The translations under genes and the position numbers were made by a program. Shown in pieces: positions 12,962-41,400 of a stretch of DNA of 64,000 bases. The notes under the pieces are model-generated. The model worked only from the letters and a program-made list of their open reading frames with translations. It made no database searches and was not told where the DNA came from. Origin of the DNA: Andalucia godoyi And28 (Eukaryota > Protista > Jakobida); contig VRVR01000015.1 of NCBI GenBank assembly GCA_009859145.1, positions 49,417 to 113,416 of the forward strand. Reading direction: 5' to 3'. Within the stretch, counting starts at the first letter, position 1. The number at the start of each line of letters is the position of its first letter.

Positions 12962-14023
12962 CTATTCATCTTCGCCATCATCTTCATCGTCCCTGTAGCG
13001 ACTATTATCACCGTCTTGCTCCTCCATGTCGTCAGAAATCTTGCTCCGACCGCTTTGTCTTTCGTGCGGATCGGGACTCTTAGAGAACAAGGATGGAGAC
13101 CGAGCCGATCGCCCAGAAATCTGTGTGTACCTCCTAGACGTCTCTCTGTTGCACATGTTGACCAACGTTTCCAATTGCTCGGAAGAGGCACATGTCATTG
13201 CCCGAGAGAGATCATCAATCACAACCTCGGGTCTGGCAAACCCGCGGTCTCCTGGGTCATTCCGTGCCTTCACGCCGCCACGTGAGGAAACCATTCGAAG
13301 CCCCGCACCTTGCCTTTCTTCGTCCCAAAAGCACATTATTGCAAATCGGACAATGTCTCCGTCTCGGATCAATGGCCGCGAGCTTCGAAACTCGACGTCG
13401 CAGAGAGACCGCGCATGCTGGATTCCGTTTTGCGCAACCATGTCGAACGCATATCTCGAATAGTCCTTCATCATGCAGAAATGCAGCAAAAATACACGAT
13501 TCGCAGCATCCTCATAAACCAAATCTGCAAAATGGCGGACGCTGCCAAGCCCCAGTTTCGTACACGGAACGTGCATCTGCATCCTCTTCACTCTTTCAAA
13601 CTTCAGAAGACTGCACGCAACACCAAAGCAAATTTCAATAGTGGTCAGCTCGGAAAAGAATGCTTTCTGTCGAAGCAGCGATCGCATCCTTTGGCGGAGG
13701 TTGATGACTGCAGTATAAGGATGTAGACCTCCGTCATCCGCCCATCGCTGGCTGCGCTGTCCATGCATGACAAGCTCAAACTTCTCAGAAACGTCAATCA
13801 GCCCAATCCGAATAAGAAACAAAACCGTCCGTCTCGCTTGCTCCGACGACGCAGGCATAAAATGTCGCCCGTACTCGTCATAAAAAGAAGTAAACAGCAC
13901 CGGAGACGACGAGACCGACGAACCACTCTCCGACGACAATTGCACCTGTGGCACCTGCTGTTGCTGCTGGGGTTGTTGTAGTTGTTGGGGACGCTCCTCA
14001 CTGACATTGATCCCTCCTTCCAT
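12962..14023 (-). CDS. Hypothetical protein, possibly a degenerate PD-(D/E)XK fold
   Basis: 353-codon ATG-initiated ORF with poly-Q N-terminus, globular middle and acidic tail; no firm family match. Confidence 0.65.
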   Translation of the reverse strand: MEGGINVSEERPQQLQQPQQQQQVPQVQLSSESGSSVSSSPVLFTSFYDEYGRHFMPASSEQARRTVLFLIRIGLIDVSEKFELVMHGQRSQRWADDGGLHPYTAVINLRQRMRSLLRQKAFFSELTTIEICFGVACSLLKFERVKRMQMHVPCTKLGLGSVRHFADLVYEDAANRVFLLHFCMMKDYSRYAFDMVAQNGIQHARSLCDVEFRSSRPLIRDGDIVRFAIMCFWDEERQGAGLRMVSSRGGVKARNDPGDRGFARPEVVIDDLSRAMTCASSEQLETLVNMCNRETSRRYTQISGRSARSPSLFSKSPDPHERQSGRSKISDDMEEQDGDNSRYRDDEDDGEDE

Positions 14024-15147: not shown

Positions 15148-17037
15148 TTATGGAGGTGGCATAGACGAAGCGTCCACAACGTGCCATTGGAAAACAATGT
15201 TTCCACTCTCGTCGCGAACAGGACCGTTTGAATCTGCAAGGAACTCGTTCGTATGATCCTCGATGACGATGCCCCCACCAAAGGAGTCGGTTGCTTCCGC
15301 CGTGTTGTCAACTATGGTAAACTTGCGATTGAGATTCGGCTGTACCACAGGGACATCGTGGACTTTCGATTCCACAGGACCGCTCGGAACTGAATTCTGC
15401 AAACAAGATGTCCAGTTAGCGTGAAACGATGCGTCCAGAGCATCCGGCGTCGACATCATCTGCTGGCTCCCAGAAACAGTGTTCTTCACATTTGCAACGG
15501 GGTCTCGACAAAACGAAGCATTGGAGTAGAAGGAGTGATGTTGCCCGGGAATCGGATATTCGCAATATCCACTAATCGGGGGCACGACGGCACCAGCGTA
15601 CGACATCTGATGATGACTCGCGGATTTTTCCGGTGCAAGATGTCCAGCGTACTCCATTTCTTCACGAGAGCGGCTTCTCGTCGTTGCAACGTGCGCAGTA
15701 CTCGGAAGATAAGGACAGAGGTGCGATGACGATGATGAGACAGATGGCAAAGAAGAAGACGAGGAAGAAAGAAAAGGAAGAGGAGGAGCAGGGGGAAAAG
15801 GATTATTTCGAGGTTCGACGTGGCCAGGCGGAAAGTGCGATGGCGCATTGAACAAGTTGGCTTCTCCGAGTGCAGAACCAGATCCGCTCCGGGACGAATA
15901 GGCGGGTGCGGCAATCGGCATGGCCCAAGGGTTGTAGTTGACAGAAGATCCATATGCAGAATAGGGAGCACTGAGATGAGTGCTCGCTTGAGACTCCGAG
16001 GCCGACGACAGTGGAGTGTGCACAGATGCCACCTTGGGAGGAACACAGGCAAGCATCATGTTCGACATCGCCGGAGTGGACGTTGATGCATAATAGGCCG
16101 CTGCAGACGCATCCGGAGAGCTGGCGAGGTGCGTACTGCCCTTTCCTGTGCTTCCGTTCGACGCGGAATGACTCATGCTGGACGTTCGCGCTCCAACGAC
16201 AATGGAAATCGGTGGCAGTGGCAGATGTTGCGACGAAGCAGAATGGGAAGACGTTGGGCAGTATTCGGTGGGGCATGACGCAAACCAAGCACGAATCGAG
16301 TTGTCAACCCCGCTCGAGGAACCGGAGCCGCTTGGATTAGACAGACTCACCGCGGACTTTGACAGAGATGGGTCAATGTAATGCGGTCGAAGACTCGGCG
16401 ACTCCGGTATGTAGACAGAGTTCTGTGTTGCTGGAGACCCATCGTCGCTGACGCGATACCGCAGGTTCCAAGCTGGAAGATCTCGACCGTGCAGTGCCGG
16501 ACCGCCATTCGGAAACGACGGGGAAATGCCTGCTGAGTGGTGACGATGGTTGTGACGGCGGTGGTTGTGGGGATGCTGAGGATCAGCATTGATGTTGTCA
16601 CACACAAGAGTCGGGTACTGTGTATGCGAATAATGAGGACGAAAATTCGACGAATTACTCGAATTTTGAAGAAGAAGGTGCTGTTGTTGTTGTTGAGGAA
16701 TCGAGGCATGTGGCTCTGAAAACGAACGGAACTGGGTAATACAATCTGGTCTTGAAAAAGCGGTTCCATGGTGGTCGGAAGCATCGGAGAGCCGTGCGTG
16801 TGAACCGCTGCTGTGGGACAAGGAAGTATGGGAAACTTCGTGCCCGCGTCCCTTGACAGGAGTCCTGCCCGACTCCGCGCTGGACGTCTGGCTGCTGGAC
16901 GAAATAGAAGGAACGGAAGCTCCTCTCTTACGCTTAGGAACAGGAACGGATAAGCTCGTAGGCTCCGACTTCCTCTTCAGCGGTACATCTCTTGTCGCTC
17001 CGGACTGCAAAGGCAGACTGCTCGTCTTTTGAGACAT
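15148..17037 (-). CDS. Low-complexity Ser/Pro/His-rich hypothetical protein with a short ordered C-terminus
   Basis: Long ORF; first plausible ATG at 17037 (MSQKTSS) after the (TGATGT)n repeat; KRK..PKRKR NLS-like motif. Confidence 0.65.
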   Translation of the reverse strand: MSQKTSSLPLQSGATRDVPLKRKSEPTSLSVPVPKRKRGASVPSISSSSQTSSAESGRTPVKGRGHEVSHTSLSHSSGSHARLSDASDHHGTAFSRPDCITQFRSFSEPHASIPQQQQQHLLLQNSSNSSNFRPHYSHTQYPTLVCDNINADPQHPHNHRRHNHRHHSAGISPSFPNGGPALHGRDLPAWNLRYRVSDDGSPATQNSVYIPESPSLRPHYIDPSLSKSAVSLSNPSGSGSSSGVDNSIRAWFASCPTEYCPTSSHSASSQHLPLPPISIVVGARTSSMSHSASNGSTGKGSTHLASSPDASAAAYYASTSTPAMSNMMLACVPPKVASVHTPLSSASESQASTHLSAPYSAYGSSVNYNPWAMPIAAPAYSSRSGSGSALGEANLFNAPSHFPPGHVEPRNNPFPPAPPLPFLSSSSSSLPSVSSSSSHLCPYLPSTAHVATTRSRSREEMEYAGHLAPEKSASHHQMSYAGAVVPPISGYCEYPIPGQHHSFYSNASFCRDPVANVKNTVSGSQQMMSTPDALDASFHANWTSCLQNSVPSGPVESKVHDVPVVQPNLNRKFTIVDNTAEATDSFGGGIVIEDHTNEFLADSNGPVRDESGNIVFQWHVVDASSMPPP

Positions 17038-18444
17038 TCCTTTGATGTTGATGTTGATGTTGATGTTGATGTTGATTTTGTATCGCTCAGAGTGGTAACT
17101 CCCGTTTGGCTGAACTCGCAGAAACAACAACACCCAGATGAATGAAAAAATAGGCTTCCAAAAAACTTGCCAAACAAACAAACAAAAAAAAAGACGCAGC
17201 AAAGCAGTTTATTGGGTCGCGGAAAGAGTTCAACCCAAAACACCCCAGTTTCAACAACAAAAAAATGAAAGGAGGGGAAGGTTTTCATTCGGAAGCGCTC
17301 CAAACAACGAAAAGGCATGAAAACTTCTTGCCAAAAAGTAGAAACGGTGTGCCCGATTGGAGCGATGATGCGTGCAAGCGCTGCGTCCCAGCCAAAGCAG
17401 GCTGCTAGGGCCAGGAAAACCGCCAGATAGCAAACATTCCGCATTTTGCGAAAATCCCAGTACTCGAATAGACGAAAGCGCTTTCGTGCGGCGTCCACAT
17501 TCTGTGACTCTGCCTGCACGTTCGAAGTCGGTGCCTTGACGCAAATTTGGCCAAGCATCACATTTCCATTCTTCTGGGAAACGGGCGGGGGTGAATGGAC
17601 ATGCGTACGGAGAGAGGCGAGGCACACATCGCAGCAGACTTTGCTCTTCTTTGGAAACTTCCGAACACCCTATCAAGCAACACCGTGCTAGCGGGTACAA
17701 ATCATCCAAACTGGGTAAGTATGAGACTTCGTCTCGTCGTTCGCTCACGCTTCGCAGCTCGAACTGCGCCTTACCAGTTTAAGGCATCCTCGATCTGCTT
17801 CTGCTGCTACCAGCCCGGAGGAGCCCGCTTCGCCTCCCGGGACCGTTCTTCGAATCCTCGGCTGCTCATACCGCGAACTTCCTTTGTTTTTTGTCGCCGG
17901 CTATCCTACGATGCCGTGGGAGCCTGCCGTCCGTTTTTTTTTTCCTTGACAGATTCCGCAGCGGTAATCGTCATACACAAACAGATGGGCCGTGGGAGCA
18001 AACGGCACTGACGTGCCTGCACAGTGCCTGCGGGCTCGGGTTGCCAAGCAGCCAGAACCCAGGTCCATCAAACCTTTTCAGGGCACGGCGGCGTCAAGCG
18101 ACAGAAGCACCTCGGAAGCCAGAAACAAGAAAAAGAAAAAAAAGAAAAGGATGTTTCGTTGCTCCGCAAGCTGTTGTTCTTCTACCAAAACATCCATCCA
18201 TTTTAAAAAATAATGAGAAGTAACAAATAGTAGTTTTCAGGAAATAGCTTCAGACTTCTGCATGCACAAACCTCTTCACTGGCAGAAACATTAAAAACAA
18301 CTCTGTTTGTGGCCGCACGATCATAGTGTCCATAGTATCAATACCAGTATTTTATACATATTTAATTCATTTTTCAAAAAAAGAAAATATTCTTGTTTCA
18401 TTCTCTTTCTCTGTGACGAACTGCGTTCCCAACTGCTGGTTGAA

Positions 18445-18519: not shown

Positions 18520-21500
18520 ATGGAGTCTCCCGGTCGCAATTCTGAAAGCCGGCCGTGGAAAGTTCTGCCGTCTCCTGAATCAACTCGGTCAATGCAGGGT
18601 GCATACACGATGCCCCATCCACCTGTTCTCGCGGCCAGCAACCCTCAGGCGCTTTCTAAAATGGGTGAGCCGCCAAAGAACCCCCTTTTCAAGTCGAAGT
18701 TCTCTGCAGCAGAACAGTTGTCCATGCTTCGACGGCCACCCCCGCCTCCAAGTACCATGCGAGATCCTAATGGCTTTCCAGAAGGGACGAACGTGTTCAG
18801 CGAGTCGCGGAATATAAGCCGATTGCTGAACGAAGATCGTCGGAGAAACAAGTTGATGTTTTGGATCATGGGAATCCACGTCGTTCTCTTTTGGGCTGTC
18901 GTTGGATTGCTTGTCTACAACACCTTGATGTTGCAGAGCCTTGCAAGGGAGTCTAACTGGGACGTTTCCAAGATGACTGCCAAACAAGTTACCACGAGTA
19001 ACTTGCAAGTTTCATCCAGTGGTCCGCAATCCGTGTCTGTGGAGTCCACGAACAACGCAGCGTCGTTATCTGTCATGTCCAGCGTTGGCGCAGCGTCCCT
19101 GGTGCTGGACGGAGCTGATTCGCCGATCTCTCTTCTCTCGCGGAATGGTGAGCTTGTGATGGAAGCAGGCAATCAGCCCGCCATGAAGATCGCTGGTTCC
19201 GGAAGCAGCTTCAACGGTAGTGTCTCGACGTCGTCTCTCAAGGCAAACACCATTGACTTGTCTGCAGGCGCTGCATCGATCCTGTCGTTTACCACTTCAC
19301 CGAGTCTTTCCCCGGATGGCAGAATCGTGACGATGGCCAGCGATGTGCAAACCAATTCGATGTCATTTGCTCCGTCCACAGGGCTGTCGATTGCAAAGGG
19401 AGCTTCCGAATTGCTGCTCATCAAGGATAATGTGCTGTTGAATTCCATCCGCGGCGGATTCGTGCAAGTGAACGACGTGCTTTTTGTAAATCAGACCGTG
19501 CAACTCTCTGGCCTCGTGGTTTCGAGTCGCGGTATCTCGGTAAGAAATGGGAGCCTCGATGTCTCGACTGCTTCTGGAGATGTGTCCATTTCTGCGGGGC
19601 ATGGAATCATTGTTGCGCAAAGCGACGTTCTTCTGCAGACAGGACGCGGACTGTATGTGTCTGATGTGTTCTCACCGTCGTCTCAAAACCTCACTTTGCA
19701 TTCCAGCACTGGATCGCTGACTTTGAATGTCTCCAGCGTGTTCATTGGTCCTGCTGAAGAGGCGACTGTGGCGCTTGCCGGTTCTCTGAGAATTGTTGCT
19801 GGCTCGGGGGCCGCTGGCACGTCTGCCATTGGTCATGGATCCGGCGGTAGTGGTGTGAAGGGAGGAGACGTCTCGATTCAAGCGGGTGCAGGTGGTGCAG
19901 GAGGGTCCTCGGGGGGATTCAGTGGTGCTGGTGGAAATGCAGGCTCTGGTGGAAATGTGCTCCTGGTTCATGGAACTGGAGGCAGCGCTGCGGCTGTAGA
20001 CATTCTTCAAACGTCTGTTGCAGGTGCTGATGGAGAGGTTATCGTATCTGCCTCCTGTCTCGTTTCAGGTGCCCACTGCGGCCCCACCGCTGCTTCCCGA
20101 ATGAGAATATCATCCCCATCACCCGTACTGTCTCTTGGAGATAAAGACGCATCGTTCGGATTTCGTGCGAACTCGTCCTCCGCCTCTAGTTCTCTTCATT
20201 TGTTTTCCGATGCATATGGTGGCGATGTCGTCAAGGTGGGGTCCTCTGCTTGGAGAGATCCATTTGACACTCGCGCGACTGTGAACATTGAGCAGGGGGT
20301 CTTGCGAATTCGCCAGGAGAACGTCGGTTATGTCGCCGCGGTTGTGTCCCCTCTCTCTACCACAGTATCACTCATCTCGCAAGTCAACAGCACCGCGGTT
20401 TCTTTCAACAATCATTTCTTTGTCGTGTCCGATAGCGCATCATTGCATCTGTTTTCATCGAGTGACACGGCAAAGAGGCTTGAGCTTCGCGCATCGGCAC
20501 CTGCGATTCTGGCAAGAGGCCTTCCGTTTTCCTTCGTCGACAACACGGTAGGCATGCAGCAAGTGATCATCACGTCAGAAAGAGTGCATGCTGCAAATGG
20601 ATCGACCATCCAAGTCGGAAGCGGAGTCGTTTCCTTTTCAGACGGGCTTGTTCTTCGTTCTCGCGAGTCAGCAATTCAATTCAAAGACTCTGCAAGCGTC
20701 ATTTCCATCAATGCCACCTCCTACTTGTCCGTCGATTCTCCGGAACCGACGAGATTCCTGGCAGGCATTGCGCTGTGCACGGCCTCTCCAGCTGCTGATC
20801 CGACGTGCGCAAATTCCATTCTTCTGAATGGAACTTCTGCGTCGATTTCCTCGGCTTCGCTGGCTCTCGATTTTTCGACGTCCACCGTGACCACGGACAA
20901 GTTGTATGGCCGAAATAGCTTGTTTCTTAGTTCGACGACCGGGGTGTTCGTGGATTCGACAAGACCGCTTTCCGGCGTAACACTCCCTGCGGCCGGTGGC
21001 TTGCTTTCAGACTTGCAAATCTTCTTTTTCAATTCCACTGTTCTGAGCCGAAATTCGTCAATCTACTTGAAGCCTGCGGATGCGCTGGTAGTCACTGGAT
21101 CTCAGCTTGTGAAAGTTGGCTCGCTGATGTTGTCTGGACAGACGAGTGTGTTGTCTGGCCCAGGAATGGTGCTTGACTATTCCGCCAACGCATTGGGCTC
21201 GACTTCCGGCCAGGGACTTGTGGTGTTCTCTCACAGTTCTCTGAAGATACTGGCTAGTTCGTCGAGCCTTATTTTGTCAGCCTCCGCATCCAGCCGCTTG
21301 CTCCTGCAGGACGGTGCTCGAATTGTGGATGGATCGACAATGGTGTTGAATTTTTCGGCGGCCTCCTTGCAGTCTCTGGGCATTCTCTATATGAACCCGC
21401 TTTCGGAAGTAGTAGTGCAAGGCACGTCAGGATCCACGACTGTAACGCTTGGAGACCGCAGCGTTTCTGAAAACATCCGCATGACGCCTACGTCCGTGAC

Positions 21501-24500
21501 AGGAGCTTCGTTGCAGCTCTTGTTTTCTGCCTCACCTGGTGTTCCGGGGGCAACGTCCTCCATCAAAGATTCTGCTCGGGATTTGGTTGTCAGTTCGCTA
21601 TACAACAAAGTGGTATTGGCGGCTGGTGCTCCAGGAATCATGGTGGAAGTCTCTCCGGAAGCGTTCACTGCCAGTGGCGGATCTGCTTCCCCTCGCATGT
21701 CCACTTCCAAATCGTCTTTCTACCTGGATTTTGGTACGCGAACGGTAGGAACCTCGGCTGGCACAGAGAGTCTTGTGCTACGCGGCGGCAATGATGTCCA
21801 AATTACAGGTACCAATCGTATTGTTTTTGGCTCAACTGTGACTGCGCAGTCGCTAACAGTGTGTGGTTCCTGCGGAGTGTCGTCTGACCAGTACTATATT
21901 TCCGGGCTGCAGCTGAAGATGGACTTTGTCGGCTCTTCGTTAGAATCACAGACTGGAGATATGATCATTTCTTCTCCTGCAGTTGCGGGTGTGGTCTCTC
22001 TTCGTTCAACGTCTGGTGTTCGACTGAAATCAGCGTCGGGCACCACCGGCTTAAATATGCGAGACGAGAATTCGAATGTTGAAATTGACTTTGCTGCGCG
22101 TTTGGTTCGATCTATGACGGGAGAACTCACCATTTTAGGAGAAGCTTCCACGAGAATTGTGTCTGGCGACGCAGGTTTATTTCTTCTGCCTTTGGGATCG
22201 GGGCCATCAAAGCCTCTGAAGATCATTGCTGGTGCAGCGGACAGTGCGTTGTACTACCAGAGACCCGTTGCAACTTGTGCGGGCACCTATACGACGTTTT
22301 TTGCTGGACAAAATGCCATTGGTGGATGTGCTTCTGGAGGTGGCGCTGTTGTGGTTTCTGCCGGCTCTGCGTTCCAAGGAGCAGGTGGCGATGTGTCGCT
22401 CATTGCTGGAGATAACACTGCTGCCCCCGGGAAAGCCGGAGATGTTTACCTCATTTCTGGCCAGAATATTGGTGGCAGCATTGGTGATACACTCGTTCAG
22501 ACTCGCCAGATGAATGTGTATTTCCGAGGAGCACAGTGGAAAGTACTGAGCGTTGGTACGAGCACCGTCGATGGTGACTTTGTGTATGTTGGAAACACGA
22601 ATTCATCGTACGCCTTCGATACCGATGCTTACACTGATCTGATTGTGACTCGGTCTCGAATTCAGAGCCTGGTTGCAGCGGAGACGATTACTATCTCAAA
22701 CGAGATTCCGGTATCTCGGAACATTCTTACCTCGATCCAGATCGGTCATCCCACCGACATGACCAAGTATACGCAGCTGATTTACGCGCGCGCGCTGCGG
22801 TATCGGTTTGTGGATCCAGCGTCGTACACAGGATTCTATATGGACCCGATCAGCATTCTGCTCAATCGATCGCACTCGATTGATGTGTGGACGACGAATC
22901 TGACAGCGCGATCGGAGGGATTCCTTGATTTTCAGACGGGGACGCAGGGTGTGCGCATGGGGCCGATTGACACGCTTCGGACGCTTGCGGTGGAGATTGG
23001 ATCGGTGAAAGCACCGGTGGAGATCTATCGTCCGCAGTCGAACGGTGTTGCTGGCACATACACGAAGCTCATTGGCCAAGATGCGTGCACGTCGTGCGGC
23101 GCTGGTGGCGCGGTGTCTGTGTATGGCGGAATGTCAAACAGTGCCTCGTCTGCAGATGTTGGTGGATCTGTCAACCTGTATGCGGGAACCGGTGGTGCTG
23201 GCAGTTCTGGCGGACCCATTTCGATTGTGGCCGGATCTGCGTCTACTTCGGGTTTTGGAGGATCCATACTTCTCCAGGCAGGGACAAGCGATATCACCAC
23301 GTCGTATGGTGGGACGAATGTGCGCACGCGGTGGTTTGATGTTCGGAGAGTATCGGGTGCGTACTCTATGATTCGGACGGACACACATACCGATGACAGC
23401 TCGGGAGACTTTGTGCACATCGGGAATACGGATGCAACGTATGCATATGACGCCGTCGAGTATACGGACAACATAGTTTTGCGCTCCCGTGTGCAGCAGC
23501 TGATTGCGGGTGAGAACATTACAATCTCGAACGAAATTCCGGTGTCGCAGAACATCGTGACGTCCATCCAGATTGGACATCCCACCGACATGACCAAGTA
23601 TACGCAGCTGATTTACGCGCGCGCGCTGCGGTATCGGTTTGTGGATCCAGCGTCGTACACAGGATTCTATATGGACCCGATCAGCATTCTGCTCAATCGA
23701 TCGCACTCGATTGATGTGTGGACGACGAATCTGACAGCGCGATCGGAGGGATTCCTTGATTTTCAGACGGGGACGCAGGGTGTGCGCATGGGGCCGATTG
23801 ACACGCTTCGGACGCTTGCGGTGGAGATTGGATCGGTGAAAGCACCGGTGGAGATCTATCGTCCGCAGTCGAACGGTGTTGCTGGCACATACACGAAGCT
23901 CATTGGCCAAGATGCGTGCACGTCGTGCGGCGCTGGCGGCGGGATATCCATTTACGGCGGTAATGCACACAGCACGCTTGCCTCTGATACCGGCGGTTCC
24001 GTAGAGTTGCGTGCTGGTCAAGGTGCTGCTTCCAGTTCTGGTGGTTCCATTTCCCTTGTAGCTGGTTCGGCATTGGGTGCCGGTACTGGTGGATCGTTGT
24101 CGATCGCCGCTGGTGCTGGAGCTGGCACATCTACGTATGGTGGTGTGAATGTTCGAACGCGGTGGTTTGATGTGCGACAGATTTCCGCAACGTATTCTTT
24201 GTTGCGCATCGACACGCATCCCGATGACACCAGTGCAGATCATGTAGACATTGGAAATGTAGACAGCTCGATTCCCTACACAGACACTCGGTATACCAAC
24301 AAAGTGCAGGTTCGGGCCACGGAATTTGCCGTCGAAGTTGGCTCTCAAATGAATGTTGTTCCTGCGCAGTCTTCGTCATCGCAATTTCTTGTCGGCTCGA
24401 ATTCGGTAGTGTTTAGTGCGATTCAGTTACGAGCCAGTACAACCACCATCTATGATGGCTCCAATGTTGCGGCCCTTACAATTGCAGCATCCTCTGCGAC

Positions 24501-25149
24501 CCTTTCGCGTTCGACCACGCTCTCTTTGGAAACCACTGCTGGCACGGGTACGATAATCAATGTCGGTACAAGCACAGCTTTCACAGAAAACGTCTACATT
24601 CGAGGAACCACCGTGAAGATTTTCACGTCTGCATCAAGTCCAACAGTGACGGTCCAAAACGGTGGCAACTTGTTGATTAGCGTCGGTGCCTCGAACTTTG
24701 TCAAGATCGTCAGTGGCGATGTCGATGTTCAGGCTGGAAAATTCCGAGAATACGGAAACAGCATTCTGCCTAAGGGTTCAATTATCTTGTTCCGTGGATC
24801 CGCCTGTCCGCCTGGCTATACATTTGTGTCCGATACGGCGGATCGAGTACTCGTTGGTGCAGTAACTTCGACCACTGCCTCCCCTTCCTCTCTTGGGCCT
24901 CTTGTTGGAGTTTCTTCCTATCAGTTTCAAGTCAAGACGTCTTCTGCGACCGTTAATCTTCCAGACCATGGGCATGCTGTGTCAACAGTTTCTCAACCTA
25001 TTTCTGGCTATGGTACTACGTCCGTCTACAGTGGACCGGCCGGGTCTGGCGTGTCGAACGTCCCCATTACTGCATTCCAATCGGATTCTAAGAACATCAA
25101 CCAAATTCTGCCCGGTGTCTACATTCTTGTTTGTGAAAAGGATATCTAG
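18520..25149 (+). CDS. 2209-aa type II membrane-anchored Ser/Gly/Thr-rich beta-repeat fibre-like protein with a C-terminal phage tail-collar-like domain
   Basis: Uninterrupted ORF; one hydrophobic helix at aa ~112-133 after RRRNK; GG-x-V/I-x-I/L-x-AG repeats; 277-aa internal repeats; C-terminal LPKGSIILFRGSACPPGY...LPDHGH...ILVCEK. Confidence 0.85.
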   Translation: MESPGRNSESRPWKVLPSPESTRSMQGAYTMPHPPVLAASNPQALSKMGEPPKNPLFKSKFSAAEQLSMLRRPPPPPSTMRDPNGFPEGTNVFSESRNISRLLNEDRRRNKLMFWIMGIHVVLFWAVVGLLVYNTLMLQSLARESNWDVSKMTAKQVTTSNLQVSSSGPQSVSVESTNNAASLSVMSSVGAASLVLDGADSPISLLSRNGELVMEAGNQPAMKIAGSGSSFNGSVSTSSLKANTIDLSAGAASILSFTTSPSLSPDGRIVTMASDVQTNSMSFAPSTGLSIAKGASELLLIKDNVLLNSIRGGFVQVNDVLFVNQTVQLSGLVVSSRGISVRNGSLDVSTASGDVSISAGHGIIVAQSDVLLQTGRGLYVSDVFSPSSQNLTLHSSTGSLTLNVSSVFIGPAEEATVALAGSLRIVAGSGAAGTSAIGHGSGGSGVKGGDVSIQAGAGGAGGSSGGFSGAGGNAGSGGNVLLVHGTGGSAAAVDILQTSVAGADGEVIVSASCLVSGAHCGPTAASRMRISSPSPVLSLGDKDASFGFRANSSSASSSLHLFSDAYGGDVVKVGSSAWRDPFDTRATVNIEQGVLRIRQENVGYVAAVVSPLSTTVSLISQVNSTAVSFNNHFFVVSDSASLHLFSSSDTAKRLELRASAPAILARGLPFSFVDNTVGMQQVIITSERVHAANGSTIQVGSGVVSFSDGLVLRSRESAIQFKDSASVISINATSYLSVDSPEPTRFLAGIALCTASPAADPTCANSILLNGTSASISSASLALDFSTSTVTTDKLYGRNSLFLSSTTGVFVDSTRPLSGVTLPAAGGLLSDLQIFFFNSTVLSRNSSIYLKPADALVVTGSQLVKVGSLMLSGQTSVLSGPGMVLDYSANALGSTSGQGLVVFSHSSLKILASSSSLILSASASSRLLLQDGARIVDGSTMVLNFSAASLQSLGILYMNPLSEVVVQGTSGSTTVTLGDRSVSENIRMTPTSVTGASLQLLFSASPGVPGATSSIKDSARDLVVSSLYNKVVLAAGAPGIMVEVSPEAFTASGGSASPRMSTSKSSFYLDFGTRTVGTSAGTESLVLRGGNDVQITGTNRIVFGSTVTAQSLTVCGSCGVSSDQYYISGLQLKMDFVGSSLESQTGDMIISSPAVAGVVSLRSTSGVRLKSASGTTGLNMRDENSNVEIDFAARLVRSMTGELTILGEASTRIVSGDAGLFLLPLGSGPSKPLKIIAGAADSALYYQRPVATCAGTYTTFFAGQNAIGGCASGGGAVVVSAGSAFQGAGGDVSLIAGDNTAAPGKAGDVYLISGQNIGGSIGDTLVQTRQMNVYFRGAQWKVLSVGTSTVDGDFVYVGNTNSSYAFDTDAYTDLIVTRSRIQSLVAAETITISNEIPVSRNILTSIQIGHPTDMTKYTQLIYARALRYRFVDPASYTGFYMDPISILLNRSHSIDVWTTNLTARSEGFLDFQTGTQGVRMGPIDTLRTLAVEIGSVKAPVEIYRPQSNGVAGTYTKLIGQDACTSCGAGGAVSVYGGMSNSASSADVGGSVNLYAGTGGAGSSGGPISIVAGSASTSGFGGSILLQAGTSDITTSYGGTNVRTRWFDVRRVSGAYSMIRTDTHTDDSSGDFVHIGNTDATYAYDAVEYTDNIVLRSRVQQLIAGENITISNEIPVSQNIVTSIQIGHPTDMTKYTQLIYARALRYRFVDPASYTGFYMDPISILLNRSHSIDVWTTNLTARSEGFLDFQTGTQGVRMGPIDTLRTLAVEIGSVKAPVEIYRPQSNGVAGTYTKLIGQDACTSCGAGGGISIYGGNAHSTLASDTGGSVELRAGQGAASSSGGSISLVAGSALGAGTGGSLSIAAGAGAGTSTYGGVNVRTRWFDVRQISATYSLLRIDTHPDDTSADHVDIGNVDSSIPYTDTRYTNKVQVRATEFAVEVGSQMNVVPAQSSSSQFLVGSNSVVFSAIQLRASTTTIYDGSNVAALTIAASSATLSRSTTLSLETTAGTGTIINVGTSTAFTENVYIRGTTVKIFTSASSPTVTVQNGGNLLISVGASNFVKIVSGDVDVQAGKFREYGNSILPKGSIILFRGSACPPGYTFVSDTADRVLVGAVTSTTASPSSLGPLVGVSSYQFQVKTSSATVNLPDHGHAVSTVSQPISGYGTTSVYSGPAGSGVSNVPITAFQSDSKNINQILPGVYILVCEKDI
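22747..23936 (+). repeat. Intragenic direct repeat: 359-bp identical copies at 22747-23105 and 23578-23936 (period 831 bp = 277 codons)
   Basis: Base-by-base comparison shows identity; flanking parts of the repeat unit are conserved in protein but diverged at synonymous sites. Confidence 0.95.
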
Positions 25150-25562: not shown

Positions 25563-28019
25563 ATGTCTGGCTGGGACGAAGGCGGAGTCTTTGTGGCGAA
25601 TGCAGGACTTGTGGACGATGCATCCGAAGGCGGGCTGAACTCGGATTCGGGTCTCCGAAATGCAGCATTGTCGACATTCCAAGCACGGCTTCGAGACTTC
25701 CTGCGACAGTTTGAGTCTGGAAATGAATATTCATACCGTGAGATGCTTACGACCCGGATTAGGACTGGAGTGTTCTCAATTCCCGTTTCGCTGGATGATT
25801 TGCGTGCATATGACCCGGCATTGGCGGATGCAATTGTGATGCAGCCCAACACGTATCTCCCGCTTCTGGATGCTGCGCTTCTGGATGCTGCGCGACTGAT
25901 CTTGCATCCCGATGAACTGATTCCGTTGTTCAATGCTCATCCAGCGGGACTGCCGGCTTCTTCGAACAATGCCACTGCCCCAACGACGTCGTTGCTGCAA
26001 GCGGAGCTGATTTACAGAGCCCGGCCGTTGCACATTCGCGATCTTTCGTCCTCACTGGTTGGGCGACTTGTTGTAGTTCGTGGAATTGTGATTGCATCGT
26101 CCAAGACACGCGCAAAGGCTTCATCGCTTGTACTATCGTGTCGATCGTGCCGTGCCGTCAAGACGGTGTCGGTACGTCCTGGATTCTCTGCAGCTTCTAT
26201 TCCCCGAAAGTGCGATGGACCATCGTCATCAGATGCAACGGCACAGTGTCCGCTGGATCCGTTCGTGGTTGTTGCAGATAAATCCACGTTTGTCGATCAA
26301 CAGACCCTGAAACTGCAAGAGCCTCCCGAGGCCGTACCGACTGGTGAAATGCCTCGACATGTCTTGTGTGCGGTGGACCGTGGATTGGTTGCCCGCGCAC
26401 CTCCGGGTTCTCGTGTTCGTATTGTTGGTGTATATTCGATTATGAACAACAATATGGGACCGACAGCTGGCGGAGTTGCCCTGCGAACACCTTACATCCG
26501 AATCGTCGGAGTGATGATGGACTCGCTTGCAGGGACGTCTTCTTCTCTTGCAAACTCGCTGTTCTCTTCTTCCAGTGCCAACCCAAGCGGTAGCAATGCG
26601 AATGGTGGCGATGCAGAGCGCACAGACGGAATGATGTGGCTCATGTCGGAAGAAGAGCAATACAAGAGGCTTGCTGCGGATCCCCAGTGCATAGACAAGC
26701 TTGTCGCCGCAATGGATCCTGCCATTTATGGCCATGAGAGAATCAAGCTGGCGGTAGCCTGCCTGCTCTTCGGAGGAGCCCGAAAGGCGCCGATGCCCAC
26801 TGGAACACGGGTCAGAGGAGACATCAATGTGTTGCTTTTGGGAGATCCTTCAACTGCAAAATCGCAGTTTCTGAAGTTTGCAGAACGTGTTGCTCCAGTC
26901 GGAGTCTATACTTCTGGAAAGGGTTCTTCAGCAGCTGGTCTTACTGCGTCTGTTGTTCGCGATCCGACCTCGGGAGAGTTCTATTTGGAAGGTGGATCCA
27001 TGGTTTTGGCGGACGGCGGAGTCGTTTGCATTGACGAGTTCGACAAGATGAGAGCATCGGATCGAGTTGCGATTCACGAAGCCATGGAGCAGCAGACAAT
27101 CTCCATTGCAAAGGCCGGTATTACCACCGTGTTGAATGCTCGTGCTGCCGTGTTGGCTGCTGCCAATCCTTTGGCTGGTCGTTACGATGATATGAAGACT
27201 GCGTCCGAGCAGGTGGATTTTCAGTCTACTATCCTTTCGCGTTTTGATCTTATCTTCATTGTGCGCGATGTTCGCGATGAAGCTCGCGATCGGTCTCTTG
27301 CGCAGCACGTCTTGGGAGTCCACATGGCCGCAACTGCCGCATCTGGCTCATCGTTGAATACGTCGCTGCTTGGTGGCGGAGGAGACGTTGTCGCTGCTGG
27401 CGCGGGCGCTGGGAAGGACGGATCCAACAGTACATCTGGACGCTCTGTTGCTCCGGTGCGCGATGAACTCAGTGTGGATTTCTTGCGAAGATACATTGCC
27501 TATTGCCGAGCACATTGCTCGCCACGTCTTTCTGCGGAAGCAGCCAGAACTTTGGAGCATTTCTTTGTACAAATTCGAGCCCAAATGAGAGAGAGATCCC
27601 GTCAAGCAGGGACGTCTGTTCGTCAAATTCCCATCACAGTGCGCCAGCTGGAATCTTTGGTGCGCGTGTCCGAGTCGCTTGCGAAGATGACTCTGTCCAC
27701 AACTGCAACCGTGGACCATATCAACCGTGCTATCGAACTGTTCAAAGCATCGACCATGGAGGCTGCGAACTCGGGAATGCTGGCTGCCGCTGACGAGTAC
27801 CTCGCACCAGAAACCCGTGCTGCGATCTCGCGGGCGGAAGCTATGGTGCAGCGCTTGGTCGGCATCGGACAGATTGCGGCATCTGGAAAGGTTGTGGAAA
27901 GCGTGGTGTCTCAAGCTGGTGTTGGAGACTTCGCTGTCCATCGTGCTCTTTTTGCGATGGAAAAACGCGGCGAAATCGAGTTTCTCAGACAAAAGAAACA
28001 GTTCAAGAGGATGCGGTGA
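25563..28019 (+). CDS. MCM5: DNA replication licensing factor MCM5
   Basis: MSGWDEG N-terminus, CRSC zinc finger, GDPSTAKSQFLK Walker A, VCIDEFDKM Walker B, ILSRFDLIF arginine finger, ITVRQLESLVR. Confidence 0.97.
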   Translation: MSGWDEGGVFVANAGLVDDASEGGLNSDSGLRNAALSTFQARLRDFLRQFESGNEYSYREMLTTRIRTGVFSIPVSLDDLRAYDPALADAIVMQPNTYLPLLDAALLDAARLILHPDELIPLFNAHPAGLPASSNNATAPTTSLLQAELIYRARPLHIRDLSSSLVGRLVVVRGIVIASSKTRAKASSLVLSCRSCRAVKTVSVRPGFSAASIPRKCDGPSSSDATAQCPLDPFVVVADKSTFVDQQTLKLQEPPEAVPTGEMPRHVLCAVDRGLVARAPPGSRVRIVGVYSIMNNNMGPTAGGVALRTPYIRIVGVMMDSLAGTSSSLANSLFSSSSANPSGSNANGGDAERTDGMMWLMSEEEQYKRLAADPQCIDKLVAAMDPAIYGHERIKLAVACLLFGGARKAPMPTGTRVRGDINVLLLGDPSTAKSQFLKFAERVAPVGVYTSGKGSSAAGLTASVVRDPTSGEFYLEGGSMVLADGGVVCIDEFDKMRASDRVAIHEAMEQQTISIAKAGITTVLNARAAVLAAANPLAGRYDDMKTASEQVDFQSTILSRFDLIFIVRDVRDEARDRSLAQHVLGVHMAATAASGSSLNTSLLGGGGDVVAAGAGAGKDGSNSTSGRSVAPVRDELSVDFLRRYIAYCRAHCSPRLSAEAARTLEHFFVQIRAQMRERSRQAGTSVRQIPITVRQLESLVRVSESLAKMTLSTTATVDHINRAIELFKASTMEAANSGMLAAADEYLAPETRAAISRAEAMVQRLVGIGQIAASGKVVESVVSQAGVGDFAVHRALFAMEKRGEIEFLRQKKQFKRMR

Positions 28020-37129: not shown

Positions 37130-38465
37130 AACACGAGCTTTCCTTGATGCTCTTGTGGTATTTCTTCTTGATGTGACCCGCATACGACTTTGCAGAAGTT
37201 CATTCGCTGTTTTTGATGAAACGCTCATCCACACGTGTCCGGGAGCCCTTTTTAATTGCATATGCAAATTTTGATCCGATATCTCATACTAGCGTGGCGG
37301 CGGAGAAAACAAAAGGCCGTGGACTGTGTTTTTTTGCCATGCCATCCCAGTATCCCCGTTTTCTCTGTCTCTCAAGCAGCTTCATGCGAATTTGCCTCAC
37401 CGAAAAGAGCTCGCGGCGACGGTTCCACTGCATTCAGCCCAATCGCAGACTGAAGGTAGTTGGATCGCTAATCGTGCCAAACTCGTGGATGAGCAGAAGA
37501 AACGACGAACGAAAAACAACCAGCAACAGTTTGCCCAGCTGCAGGAGGCGACGCGAAAGTCTGTGCAAGGCCAAACCGATCTTTCGTACCAGCGCGGGGC
37601 AGGAAGTTGGGTTTTCTTCGCTGTCCTACCGGGACTCGCTTCATGCTGAGTCTCCCGAAGAATGGTATGATTCACGTTAATTGAGCATCCGCCTAGCGGC
37701 CTAGCGGATCTGATGTCCATCAGCGGATGTTGCGAGAATCGCAAAAACGGTTCGAGAGGAGGCCCGCCGAGCTTCCTGCTGTTTGTTCGGGCAGCGCGAA
37801 TCCACCACGACAGAACAGTCGCTCCGACGATCGGTTTCTGCGAATTCGGATCACCTCAAAACAACACCATCACAGTCTGCTTGCACGCAATCAAGGATCT
37901 CCTCGCATGCACCTGTACAACATCACCGGCAAAAGGCGATCTGCGGATCAGCGAGCGGAAAACATAGGAGCAGACAGTGAATTCATGTCAGTCTTCTGTC
38001 AGCAAACTCGGGCAGATCATCGCATGCATGGATCGCTAGAAGCTGGCAAGCCGGTGGAGAACGGTATTGCCGGGGATCAACTTTTTTCCTGTTCAGGAAG
38101 AACTCATACGGCTCTCCGCTATATGGCAGTCACGAAGAGATGATGTGCATCTATCAGCCTCCTCACACCCTGAGGCTCCGCACTCGCCGTTTTTCCGGTG
38201 CAAAAATAGGACATCCTATGGGGCTCCAACGAGCCAGAACGGATGTTGTGCAATGTGCTCAAAGAACCTACTAGTACATTCTGTGTTGCCGTTTACCCGT
38301 TCGCTGTTTCTCTTTTTCTTCATCATCTCCTTCATCTTTTCCCCCTCCTTTCCCTCTCTTTTGTCTTTTCATATATCTTCTTATTTGCGAGACCTTGCTC
38401 CTGCTTTTGGAAAACAAGAAAGGTATTTGGGACAGCTAGATACTCCATTCCTTCACATTCAGAAC

Positions 38466-41400
38466 ATGGGTAAAACTTGCAGTACAGGTACAGCAGAGAC
38501 TGGTGCTTCATCTGGAGACAACGTCCGCGTATCTTCGATGCCGGTAGCCGAAGCATTCTGGGATGTCATGCAGGAGTTCAGAACCTGCTGCCGCCGCGGC
38601 AAGTCGCATCTGTTGCTGGAAGTGTGCGCCACCTTGTTCCTCATGTTAACTCCGCTGTTTGCTGTTACCTACCAGCAATGGGTGTCGCAGCCTTCTTCGT
38701 TTGCATTCTTGTACTTCACGTCGATTGTGACACTGGCCACATCGTTTGCAGTCGCTTGGAAAGTCCTTATCGCAGGCATCCAGACAGCCCGAGATGGCAG
38801 TTCAACAAGAAGCGGGCTGGCACTGAAGAGCGCTGGGGCGCTGTGGAGCTACTTTGCATCGTCGTGGCTCATTTTGGGTGTATTCACTGTTCTGAATGTT
38901 TCTCAAATCTCCGCTTTGTGGGATGATGCAATCCTTTCTTCGCTAGTGCTGGCGACGACTGTTGTTTTCGCGCTACTGGTAATGACATCATTGCCAGTCT
39001 ACTTCTTGCTCATGAGTTCCTTCCGCATCCTCAGGCCCACGGCATATTGCACTGCAGGCAATACGGATCAAGTTCTTCGCTTTGTCCTGCACGTCGCCAT
39101 GACGATTTCCATCGCATTCTATGAGCAGACGGCTGCTCCCTTTGCTGCATCGTGCATTGCAGGAGGCTTGATTGTTCTTGCGCACCAAGCATCAAAGCTG
39201 CAGTACAGAACGATGAACACCAATCTCATCTTCACGTTCGTTGGTGCCTCGACAGTTGGAATGGGAATCTACGTAGGGTTTGTGCCTTCTGATGCGGCGT
39301 TCATTGCGGCATTGCTTGCTCTACTCTTTGTCATGCCATGCTTGCCAACCTTCCTCGTCTGGCGTCGGCTGCTCGTGTCCCATGGTCCAATTGGCTCTCG
39401 CAATCGAGTCTACGACTCATCGTCTGTGGACGAAAGCGCCGAGTGCTCGCCGCGCAGTGCTTCCACGGCTGCCCAGCTGCCCGCCGTGGAGTATTTGCAA
39501 AAGGGAAATTTTGCAGACGACATGGAAAAGGGAAACTGCAGCAAGAGTCCAATGTCTGGCACTGGTAAGCAAGAGCAGTTTCCAGATCGACTGCTTCGCG
39601 AGTCGATACTGCTTCCGGGAGTGTCCGAGATGGAATCTGCAGAACTGTTCATGCGCATATTCTGCGGCAACATGCAGCGTTTGATGAACATGCACACAAC
39701 CGCGTACGACGAGGAACTCCCAGTGCTCTTGGAAGATATGTCCACTGCGCTCTCACGCGCATTAGAGATGTGGCCACGTGACGCAGAACTGCAGTTGTTC
39801 CATTTAACGTTCTTTGTGGAGTGCGGAGTGCTCACGTCCAATGCCCGCTGGCTTTCTCGAGCAACCACATCCTCTGGAACGGAGCTCTTTGAAAACGCTG
39901 GCAAGATCCTGAAGTTCAACCACTACTGCTTGGTTGTCGAAAAGCAGAAGAACATGTGCTCTCTTTCCGGAGCCAGTTTCGAATCCAAGCTGCTGCAGAA
40001 GCGCCTGAAACGGATCAACGGACTTCGGGCAGCCATTTTATCACTGCAAACACAGTTTTGGAAGACGCTTCTAGTGGATTCATCCAACATTGCGATGCTA
40101 TCGCAACTATCTTCTTTGATGGGAAAACTGGATGCAGAAGTATGGAAAATCTGGGCCAACCTAGATCGCATCTTTGGCTCAAGTGCGGATCTTCTCCGAG
40201 CCAAAGCCGAGTATGCTGGGGAAGTGAACGGAAACCATCCCTTAGCACACGAGATGTTCATGCGTGCTGAACAGATTGAAGACCACACCTACAAAGCTAA
40301 CCGGCAGTGGAACGGTGCACGCCAAGACTCGGTGGACGAGGAGTTCGTTAGCACGTCTCCCGGCGCTGAAATGAGTGCTCCGTCGACTAGACACTCCTCT
40401 GTGGCTCAGCATGAGATTCTCGGGCACTCCTCCGACACCATTCCACCGGTGCGAAGGGAGAGCATCCAGTTTTCTGAAAAGTCCTACTCGCATGTTCTGG
40501 AAGTGCGAACCGAGGAGCTTCCCGCGAGCCGCAAAGTTGTCAGTCGAAAATCCGCGCTGCGTCCGTCTCTTGGAGAGATGAGCAGCGTCCAGGGAAGTGA
40601 GTGTGGCGATGCATGCGACGCCGGTAGCGAGAGTGACGCCGATCCCGACGAAGCGAGCAGCTCTGCTGGGTCTGCTCAAGCCAGGTACGCCAGACTGAAA
40701 CAAGTTCGGCAGGAGTTCCTCAGTCGACAGTCCGCTTACCTGTCCAAGATGCAACATATGATGATTATTGCGATCGTGATCTCTCTGTTCGTGTTCCTTG
40801 GATTCTACCTGATGACAATTCTTGTTGTTCGACCACCAGTTACCGAGATCGACAGCGTAACCGGAGAACCGCTATCCACAGACAGTAATTCGTTGACGTT
40901 TGCATTTGACAATGCGAACAAACTGAAAGTCCCTCTTTCATCTGCACCGGGACAGGCACGCATTTGGCTGGACAAGCTGGCGACGGACTCGAATCGAGCG
41001 TCTCTTGGCGCGTTCACAAACACAATGACTTCCAATTTCCTGCGATATCTTGACCGACTGAACCGCAAGCGTGCGTCCTCCCAGTATGCACTGGAAGTAA
41101 TGAGCAGAGAATCAAATACGATCGTCTTTGCGGGTGAAACAGGAATAACATATCAATCATGGAACACATCTGCGAGAGCTGTTCGGAACGAGGATGTTCT
41201 TCAATTGACGGCGGTTCAGCTGACGAGAATGCGTGATTGCGTGTCGGCTGCCAAGAATTATGCCCTGACGAGGAACTCGACTACGGGACTGAACACAGTT
41301 ATTCCAACCCCAACAGTGACCTGCCAGGAGGGCTTCTTGTTCCTTTCGTACAACGGAAACACTGCATTATGGAACGCTCTCTCGGAAATCACGGACGTTT

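Follow-up and report, generated by a model that had tools for sequence, protein, structure and literature searches.

Gene structure and the public gene model

The DNA considered here is a stretch of 64,000 nucleotides (nt) from the jakobid Andalucia godoyi And28 (contig VRVR01000015.1, positions 49,417 to 113,416), the whole of which is referred to below as the window. On its forward (+) strand, to which all the coordinates given for the gene refer, positions 18520-25149 form one ATG-started open reading frame (ORF) of 2209 codons plus the stop codon, with 0 internal stops, a length far beyond chance in DNA of about 51% GC. The encoded protein consists of a proline-rich N-terminal tail, a single type II membrane anchor, a long ectodomain with repeated modules and a C-terminal tip domain that is kin to the tail-collar domains of tail fibres, and it belongs to a multigene family.

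The best database match of the window protein is EukProt ANDGO_04149 from A. godoyi, a model of 1932 amino acids (aa). The first 1530 and the last 529 residues of the two are identical, therefore the difference is exactly one unit of 277 aa, which is absent from ANDGO_04149; there are three such units in the window copy and two in the public model, and the gene is thus ANDGO_04149 with one extra module. An exact direct repeat of 359 nt lies within the gene (22747-23105 is identical to 23578-23936), and it could explain either of the two origins that the extra unit could have, namely a collapse in the assembly behind the public model or a true difference in copy number between strains. The A. 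godoyi genome is about 20 Mb in size, compact and mostly intron-free (PMC7050145), which fits a giant gene without introns. All six of the A. godoyi genes of this family are annotated as hypothetical proteins, and in the searchable literature we found no mention of any of the six and nothing relevant on the tail collar in protists.

N-terminal tail and membrane anchor

The first 111 residues (18520-18852) are predicted to form a Pro-rich cytoplasmic tail, which ends with RRRNK directly before a single transmembrane helix at aa 112-133 (18853-18918). This helix is the only strongly hydrophobic stretch of the protein, with the best 19-residue segment beginning at aa 112-116. Net charges of +4 over the 15 residues that precede it and of -1 over the 15 that follow indicate, by the positive-inside rule, an N-in/C-out topology, i.e. 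type II. The family members with a complete N-terminus share this single helix, which is flanked N-terminally by positive charge, and His120 and Trp125 within it are unchanged in the alignment of eight family members. The tail also holds an NPLF motif (aa 54-57, positions 18679-18690 of the window), which occurs in ANDGO_08282 and ANDGO_02946 and not in the other four tails. It is possible that NPLF serves as a sorting or adaptor motif; as a feature of the family it was rejected, because it is present in only three of the seven tails.

Repeats and modules of the ectodomain

The ectodomain is rich in Ser, Gly, Val, Ala and Thr, residues whose shares in the composition of the protein are 15.1, 10.9, 9.1, 9.1 and 8.2%, respectively. 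Next to the membrane lies stalk A (aa 134-429, 18919-19806), an alternating, Ser/Thr-rich sequence for which ANDGO_08282 gave the only detectable homologue. It is followed by Gly-rich segment 1 (aa 430-520, 19807-20079), which was also matched in the family member P0003, and by stalk B (aa 521-769, 20080-20826), for which no homologue was detected outside the close paralogue. The region at aa 770-1248 (20827-22263) is made of weak repeats of about 55-65 aa, as seen from a motif spacing of 55-65 residues or double that; the profile-profile self-matches of aa 770-1250 have E-values of 2e-4 to 1e-3. In pairwise HMMER comparisons the membrane-proximal stalk could not be aligned between distant paralogues, and word-index searches with the whole protein, with aa 520-1255 and with the family alignment retrieved only ANDGO_04149 and ANDGO_08282, the method being swamped by low-complexity words.

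The distal half is built from three modules, which are defined together by DNA repeats spaced 831 nt apart and by protein self-matches at an offset of 277 residues with up to 97% identity: module 1 at aa 1249-1518 (22264-23073), module 2 at aa 1519-1795 (23074-23904; 277 aa, the unit absent from the public gene model) and module 3 at aa 1796-2049 (23905-24666), whose body has diverged. At the start of each stands a Cys pair, which in modules 2 and 3 is a CxxC; Gly-rich repeats of 16-19 aa come next, and after them a body of about 190 aa. Moreover, profile-profile comparison found that the body recurs, with aa 1330-1520 matching aa 1890-2050 at a probability of 97.8% (E 9e-13) and aa 1130-1255 matching aa 1330-1520 at 95%.

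A profile built from eleven Gly-rich segments was compared with the PDB. Its top four matches were the gp5/VgrG spike 9gtr (chain q, E 0.0064), the type VI secretion spike 6sjl (chain A, E 0.018), Gp5 9vzk (chain q, E 0.24) and the fibre 8on5 of an extracellular contractile injection system (eCIS; E 0.28), all of which agree in kind, being trimeric beta-helical spikes or fibres. In addition, one of the eleven segments matched Pfam DUF2345 (E 0.0047), while no family member reaches the Pfam cut-off. The Gly-rich segments may thus have a weak likeness to the triple-stranded beta-helix of gp5/VgrG spikes. When the whole protein was searched with Pfam and PHROG families, neither an OB-fold nor a lysozyme or gp27-like part was found.

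Most of this layout had been anticipated in a preliminary description of the window, made from the letters alone. The intronless ORF of 2209 aa proved to be uninterrupted from ATG to stop; the Pro-rich tail, the RRRNK motif and the one type II helix at aa ~112-133 agree with the hydrophobicity and the flanking charge; and the Ser/Gly/Thr/Val-rich ectodomain and the 277-aa modules with Gly-rich repeats were recovered by the composition, the 831-nt repeats and the 97% self-identity reported above. Of its claim about glycosylation only one half held. The count of roughly 20 N-x-S/T sequons was right (20 in the protein, 19 of them in the ectodomain), but 1000 shuffles of the ectodomain gave 19.1 +/- 3.8; the number is therefore that expected by chance and is no evidence of glycosylation, which was accordingly rejected as an argument.

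The C-terminal tip domain

The last 160 residues (aa 2050-2209, 24667-25146) belong among the domains of the tail-collar / gp10_C kind, of which they represent a divergent branch. A profile of these residues, made from 42 sequences, matched the PDB entries 9qgo ('Tail fiber protein', E 2e-4), 9cuy ('Short tail fiber', E 0.005) and 8kec ('Long tail fiber', E 0.17). A profile of the whole family gave no match in the PDB, and PDB sequence searches with single sequences (the whole protein and seven pieces of it) gave nothing significant. When 1.84 billion representatives were searched exhaustively by HMMER with a profile covering aa 1885-2209, 92 proteins were retrieved at E <= 1e-3, among which the giant proteins rank best; 85 of the 92 are small proteins from metagenomes and metagenome-assembled genomes (MAGs), 13 of these 85 carrying the Pfam domain Collar and 6 Gp10_C, and one small homologue is named microcystin-dependent protein. 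Neither PF07484 (Collar) nor PF21939 (Gp10_C) was matched by the whole protein or its C-terminal pieces, even at E <= 10. Among 50,697 phage records, tblastn of the tip gave only a weak match (E 0.3); it is to Synechococcus phage S-TIP37, where it falls on the sub-threshold Collar region that a putative tail fibre itself has. The remaining weak Pfam matches (Ephrin_rec_like, PD40, Sarcoglycan_1 and DUF7323) were treated as noise, and DUF2345 was kept as a lead.

Thirteen columns are kept in at least 90% of the 42 sequences, namely P2084, G2086, C2096, P2097, G2099, G2108, R2109, G2113, H2150, H2152, P2198, C2205 and K2207. Two of them make up a His-x-His motif (H2150, H2152), which is present in seven of the eight jakobid-type tips. 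Between paralogues the middle of the tip varies and the frame around it is conserved.

An AlphaFold2 (AF2) monomer model of the tip made from the 42-sequence alignment has a mean predicted local distance difference test (pLDDT) score of 68.5, with a core near 90. When it was compared with the PDB by Foldseek, the best E-value was 0.45, and the C-terminal domain of T4 gp10 was matched at E 2.6. The eight fold matches, although weak, agree in kind: two entries for the C-terminal domain of T4 gp10, the tip of the T4 long fibre, a phage baseplate, a fibre of an eCIS, and 6ov6 with three chains. In BFVD the best match was a myovirus tail fibre protein (E 2e-3, probability 0.99, TM-score 0.33), and the named matches are nearly all tail-collar or Gp10_C proteins, including those of Orpheovirus and of Cafeteria roenbergensis virus (E 0.03). 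Thus the Foldseek comparison with phage fibres proposed in the preliminary description, carried out here with a monomer model, agrees in kind with the proposal in BFVD, where almost only tail-collar proteins were matched, at a TM-score of only ~0.3, and gave no significant match in the PDB. Likewise, the tail-collar-like nature that had been suggested for the tip misses the Pfam threshold, but it is upheld by the tail-fibre profile match, by homologues with Collar or Gp10_C domains and by low-scoring fold matches of the same kind, and it is because of these three results that we place the tip there.

A multigene family of jakobids

Full-length relatives with the same transmembrane helix, modules and tip were found only in A. 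godoyi, in Stygiella incarcerata and in two environmental sequences. A. godoyi has at least six members (ANDGO_04149, 08282, 02946, 02842, 07176 and 02922). The Stygiella homologues come from a transcriptome and are two transcripts, one a fragment and the other, from a second gene, full-length with 1665 aa. The environmental members are a 2061-aa protein on a Logan contig and a 1628-aa protein from a JGI metagenome, the latter resembling the 1665-aa Stygiella protein. In every giant member the tip lies at the extreme C-terminus, and the number of modules per gene ranges from 0 to 4 or more copies. Since members are present in both A. godoyi and Stygiella, the family is older than the split between Andalucia and Stygiella. 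It has expanded in A. godoyi, and apart from its anchor, modules and tip it evolves fast.

Two of these sequences deserve a remark on their models. ANDGO_02842 (P0005, 2636 aa) has the most modules, with four CxxC starts, and its model lacks the N-terminal tail and transmembrane helix of the other paralogues, therefore its 5' end may be mis-annotated. The Logan SRR15116022 contig (L002; SRR15116022_15529) is 6623 nt long and has a GC content of 0.59, compared with 0.51 in the window; the called N-terminus of its 2061-aa protein, with ~210 aa before the transmembrane helix, looks over-extended.

Relatives of the tip in prokaryotes and phages

Outside jakobids, the nearest relatives of the tip are mostly from bacterial and archaeal MAGs, with some from phage contigs. 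They belong to a Cys-pair tip subfamily that, in a search for related loci with seven prokaryotic sequences, proved widespread in MAGs, among them those of Elusimicrobia, Patescibacteria, Woesearchaeota, Planctomycetota and Myxococcota. Its settings in MAGs are without obvious phage character. For example, a Cys-pair tip protein stands beside Beta_helix proteins in a Planctomycetota MAG (positions 1202-2386 of locus L003), and another is part of a pilus or type II secretion-like cluster (7878-9716 of L004). The subfamily also occurs in IMG/VR contigs, in one of which it stands between the head genes and the tail genes of a virion structural module (3461-4384 of L006). We conclude that the source of the jakobid tip is prokaryotic or phage, the two being indistinguishable by these comparisons. 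The preliminary description had called the protein a virus- or phage-related fibre; the kinship of the tip to tail-collar domains agrees with this, but a viral source does not follow, as the nearest relatives are mostly from bacterial and archaeal MAGs.

Proposed organization and alternative explanations

On balance, and with moderate confidence, we interpret these genes as a jakobid-restricted multigene family of giant, type II membrane-anchored and probably trimeric surface fibres that carry a prokaryote- or phage-type tip. The Pro-rich tail would lie in the cytoplasm, the one helix with its conserved His and Trp would span the membrane, and the ~2075 residues that follow would be outside the cell or in a lumen, for which an oxidising, extracytoplasmic location is consistent with the conserved cysteines of the ectodomain. 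The outer part would be a beta-rich stalk of repeats, whose distal half is made of modules that vary in number and have, besides a Cys pair, 16-19-residue Gly-rich repeats that may resemble the triple-stranded beta-helix of gp5/VgrG, and the chain would end in the 160-residue domain of the tail-collar / gp10_C kind with its conserved His-x-His and Cys pair. Tail-collar tips and gp5/VgrG helices are trimeric, and in the solved phage fibre tips of T4 gp12 and gp37 the His-x-His motifs from three chains bind metal on the three-fold axis. From these facts and from the conservation of His-x-His in the jakobid tips we infer that three chains probably associate into one long fibre, with the N-termini anchored in the plasma membrane and a ligand-binding tip presented at the other end. 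Going by the number of residues per length in phage long tail fibres, such a fibre would roughly measure on the order of 100 nm.

In a bacterivorous flagellate such a fibre might be used for binding the surfaces of bacteria or of the substrate, in prey capture or in adhesion, and the binding of prey or substrate is the most likely function in the sense of being the most economical one for a bacterivore. The paralogues differ in how many modules they have and in the middle of the tip; this is in keeping with fibres that vary in reach and specificity, which the paralogues would then offer to the cell. It is a bolder and more doubtful proposal that the family is one of receptors built by jakobids from prokaryotic or phage tail-fibre parts, namely a tip of tail-collar type and spike-like beta-helical segments, anchored in the plasma membrane and diversified to recognise bacterial prey; a predator would then have the same kind of device as phages for recognising bacterial surfaces.

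Several results weigh against the fibre interpretation. Searches of Pfam, PHROGs and NCBIfam with the whole protein and seven pieces found no curated family at threshold for any part of it, and the proximal ~1100 aa have no detectable relative outside the closest paralogue that would indicate their fold. The first AF2 monomer model (aa 1885-2209, 325 aa, 8 sequences) was poor, with a pLDDT of 44, and the fold matches of the later one reach a TM-score of ~0.3 only, with no significant match in the PDB. The likeness to gp5/VgrG is borderline and comes from low-complexity sequence, the family member P0003 is without His-x-His, and the sequons, as mentioned above, are not enriched over the shuffled ectodomain.

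Some of these points would also suit a monomeric beta-solenoid protein of the surface coat or of adhesion, with a single-chain repetitive stalk like that of bacterial passenger-domain adhesins and a C-terminal domain acting as a monomeric lectin-like module. The Ser/Gly/Thr-rich repeats have no significant match to any trimeric fold, the gp5/VgrG matches are only borderline, and the AF2 monomer models, which are not confident, are compatible with it. Nevertheless, we regard such a monomer as unlikely, because the domains to which the tip family is related are, to our knowledge, known only as trimers, because the conserved His-x-His makes most sense on a three-fold axis, and because every one of the top PDB matches obtained with the Gly-rich profile is a trimeric spike or fibre. 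A role as a structural component of the cyst wall, the extracellular matrix or the flagellar vane or surface, where the tip would serve for assembly and not for ligand capture, could be seen in a large, repetitive, Ser/Gly/Thr-rich protein with conserved cysteines that is encoded by a multigene family. We consider it quite unlikely, since the conserved cytoplasmic tail and the membrane anchor with its invariant residues fit a tethered receptor or adhesin better than secreted wall material, and a variable tip middle within a conserved frame is the pattern of binding domains.

A different kind of explanation takes the gene for foreign DNA, i.e. a remnant of an integrated provirus or prophage-like element, a bacterial contamination or a very recent transfer, and not for a working host gene. 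That the relatives of the tip outside jakobids are prokaryotic and phage proteins would accord with this. However, the gene is surrounded on both sides by compactly arranged eukaryotic housekeeping genes, its GC content (0.53) is close to that of the window (0.51), along which GC is even, and neither viral neighbour genes nor a break in composition were found in the window. Furthermore, the same genome holds five paralogues, Stygiella has full-length transcripts, the N-terminal type II anchor is common to the family, and no PHROG family was matched. Foreign origin of this sort is therefore very improbable, and the provirus and contamination readings were dropped because of the eukaryotic flanks and the paralogues. 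The preliminary description had already taken the gene for a resident one with ordinary eukaryotic flanks and not for part of a provirus, and the housekeeping neighbours, the five paralogues and the relatives in a second jakobid bear it out.

Comparison with known systems

Tail-collar-tipped fibres are known from phages, bacteria and giant viruses. The closest likeness of the jakobid proteins is to Collar (PF07484), to the C-terminal domain of T4 gp10 (PF21939 Gp10_C) and to proteins like the microcystin-dependent protein (MdpB), with which they share a C-terminal domain of ~160 aa with a conserved His-x-His; the profile matches to solved tail fibres and the homologues with one or other of these domains support it, and the weak fold matches are of the same kind. 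The jakobid tip differs in that it remains below the Pfam threshold and belongs to the Cys-pair subfamily common to many MAG proteins, and in that it sits on a 2000-aa stalk and a eukaryotic type II anchor instead of being part of a virion or a small soluble protein. With the gp5/VgrG spikes of contractile injection systems (DUF2345) the likeness lies in the 16-19-residue Gly-rich repeats, whose best PDB matches are the beta-helical C-terminal parts of the spikes, but the E-values are borderline (0.005-0.02) and the jakobid segments are short and alternate with bodies of ~190 aa. The tail-collar proteins of giant viruses (the collagen-like one of Orpheovirus and that of Cafeteria roenbergensis virus) have a tip of the same kind on a long repetitive stalk and are likewise associated with eukaryotes; however, they are viral or virion proteins with collagen-like stalks, whereas the jakobid family is chromosomal and membrane-anchored, and no collagen repeats were found in it by Pfam.

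Class A scavenger receptors, transmembrane collagens and sarcoglycans are trimeric type II proteins whose stalk bears a binding head at the C-terminus. The jakobid proteins are like them by analogy and in plan only, a tail and one transmembrane helix being followed by a long stalk with the binding domain at its far end; there is no sequence relation, and the chemistry of the stalk differs. When the domains of such animal trimeric receptors were looked for with Pfam, no Collagen was found in the protein, and Sarcoglycan_1 was matched only at E 1.1 over 26 residues.

As far as our searches reach, a chromosomal family of eukaryotes in which a type II anchor carries a tip of this sort together with spike-like segments is undescribed. 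The molecular basis on which heterotrophic flagellates recognise and hold their bacterial prey is largely unknown, and jakobids, a deep-branching lineage, have been studied almost solely for their mitochondria; a multi-copy, chromosomal, membrane-anchored family with a phage-type tip is a concrete candidate for surface recognition. If the proposed organization is correct, we would clearly be dealing with a fibre domain of prokaryote or phage type that was adopted by a eukaryotic membrane protein and then expanded.

Neighbouring genes in the window

The neighbours of the gene are ordinary eukaryotic genes, tightly packed and mostly uninterrupted. They include genes for HSP70, a GST-like protein, a NUDIX protein, a p115-like protein, TCP-1, MCM5 (25563-28019), Tudor-SN, a radial spoke head protein, an ADP-ribosylglycohydrolase, a PAS-cyclase, a Dpy-30 protein, an SF1 helicase, a PP2C and a polycystin-type channel. 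The HSP70 ORF (30-1940, +) matches the Pfam profile only from position 154 on, and therefore the N-terminal part lies outside the window or across an intron. For two sizeable ORFs upstream of the giant gene, at 12962-14023 (-, 353 aa) and 15148-17202 (-, 684 aa), no Pfam family was matched at E <= 0.001. Downstream, positions 38067-43640 (+) hold an ORF of 1857 aa with TPR and PAS domains and a C-terminal adenylate/guanylate cyclase domain, which is a large signalling protein.

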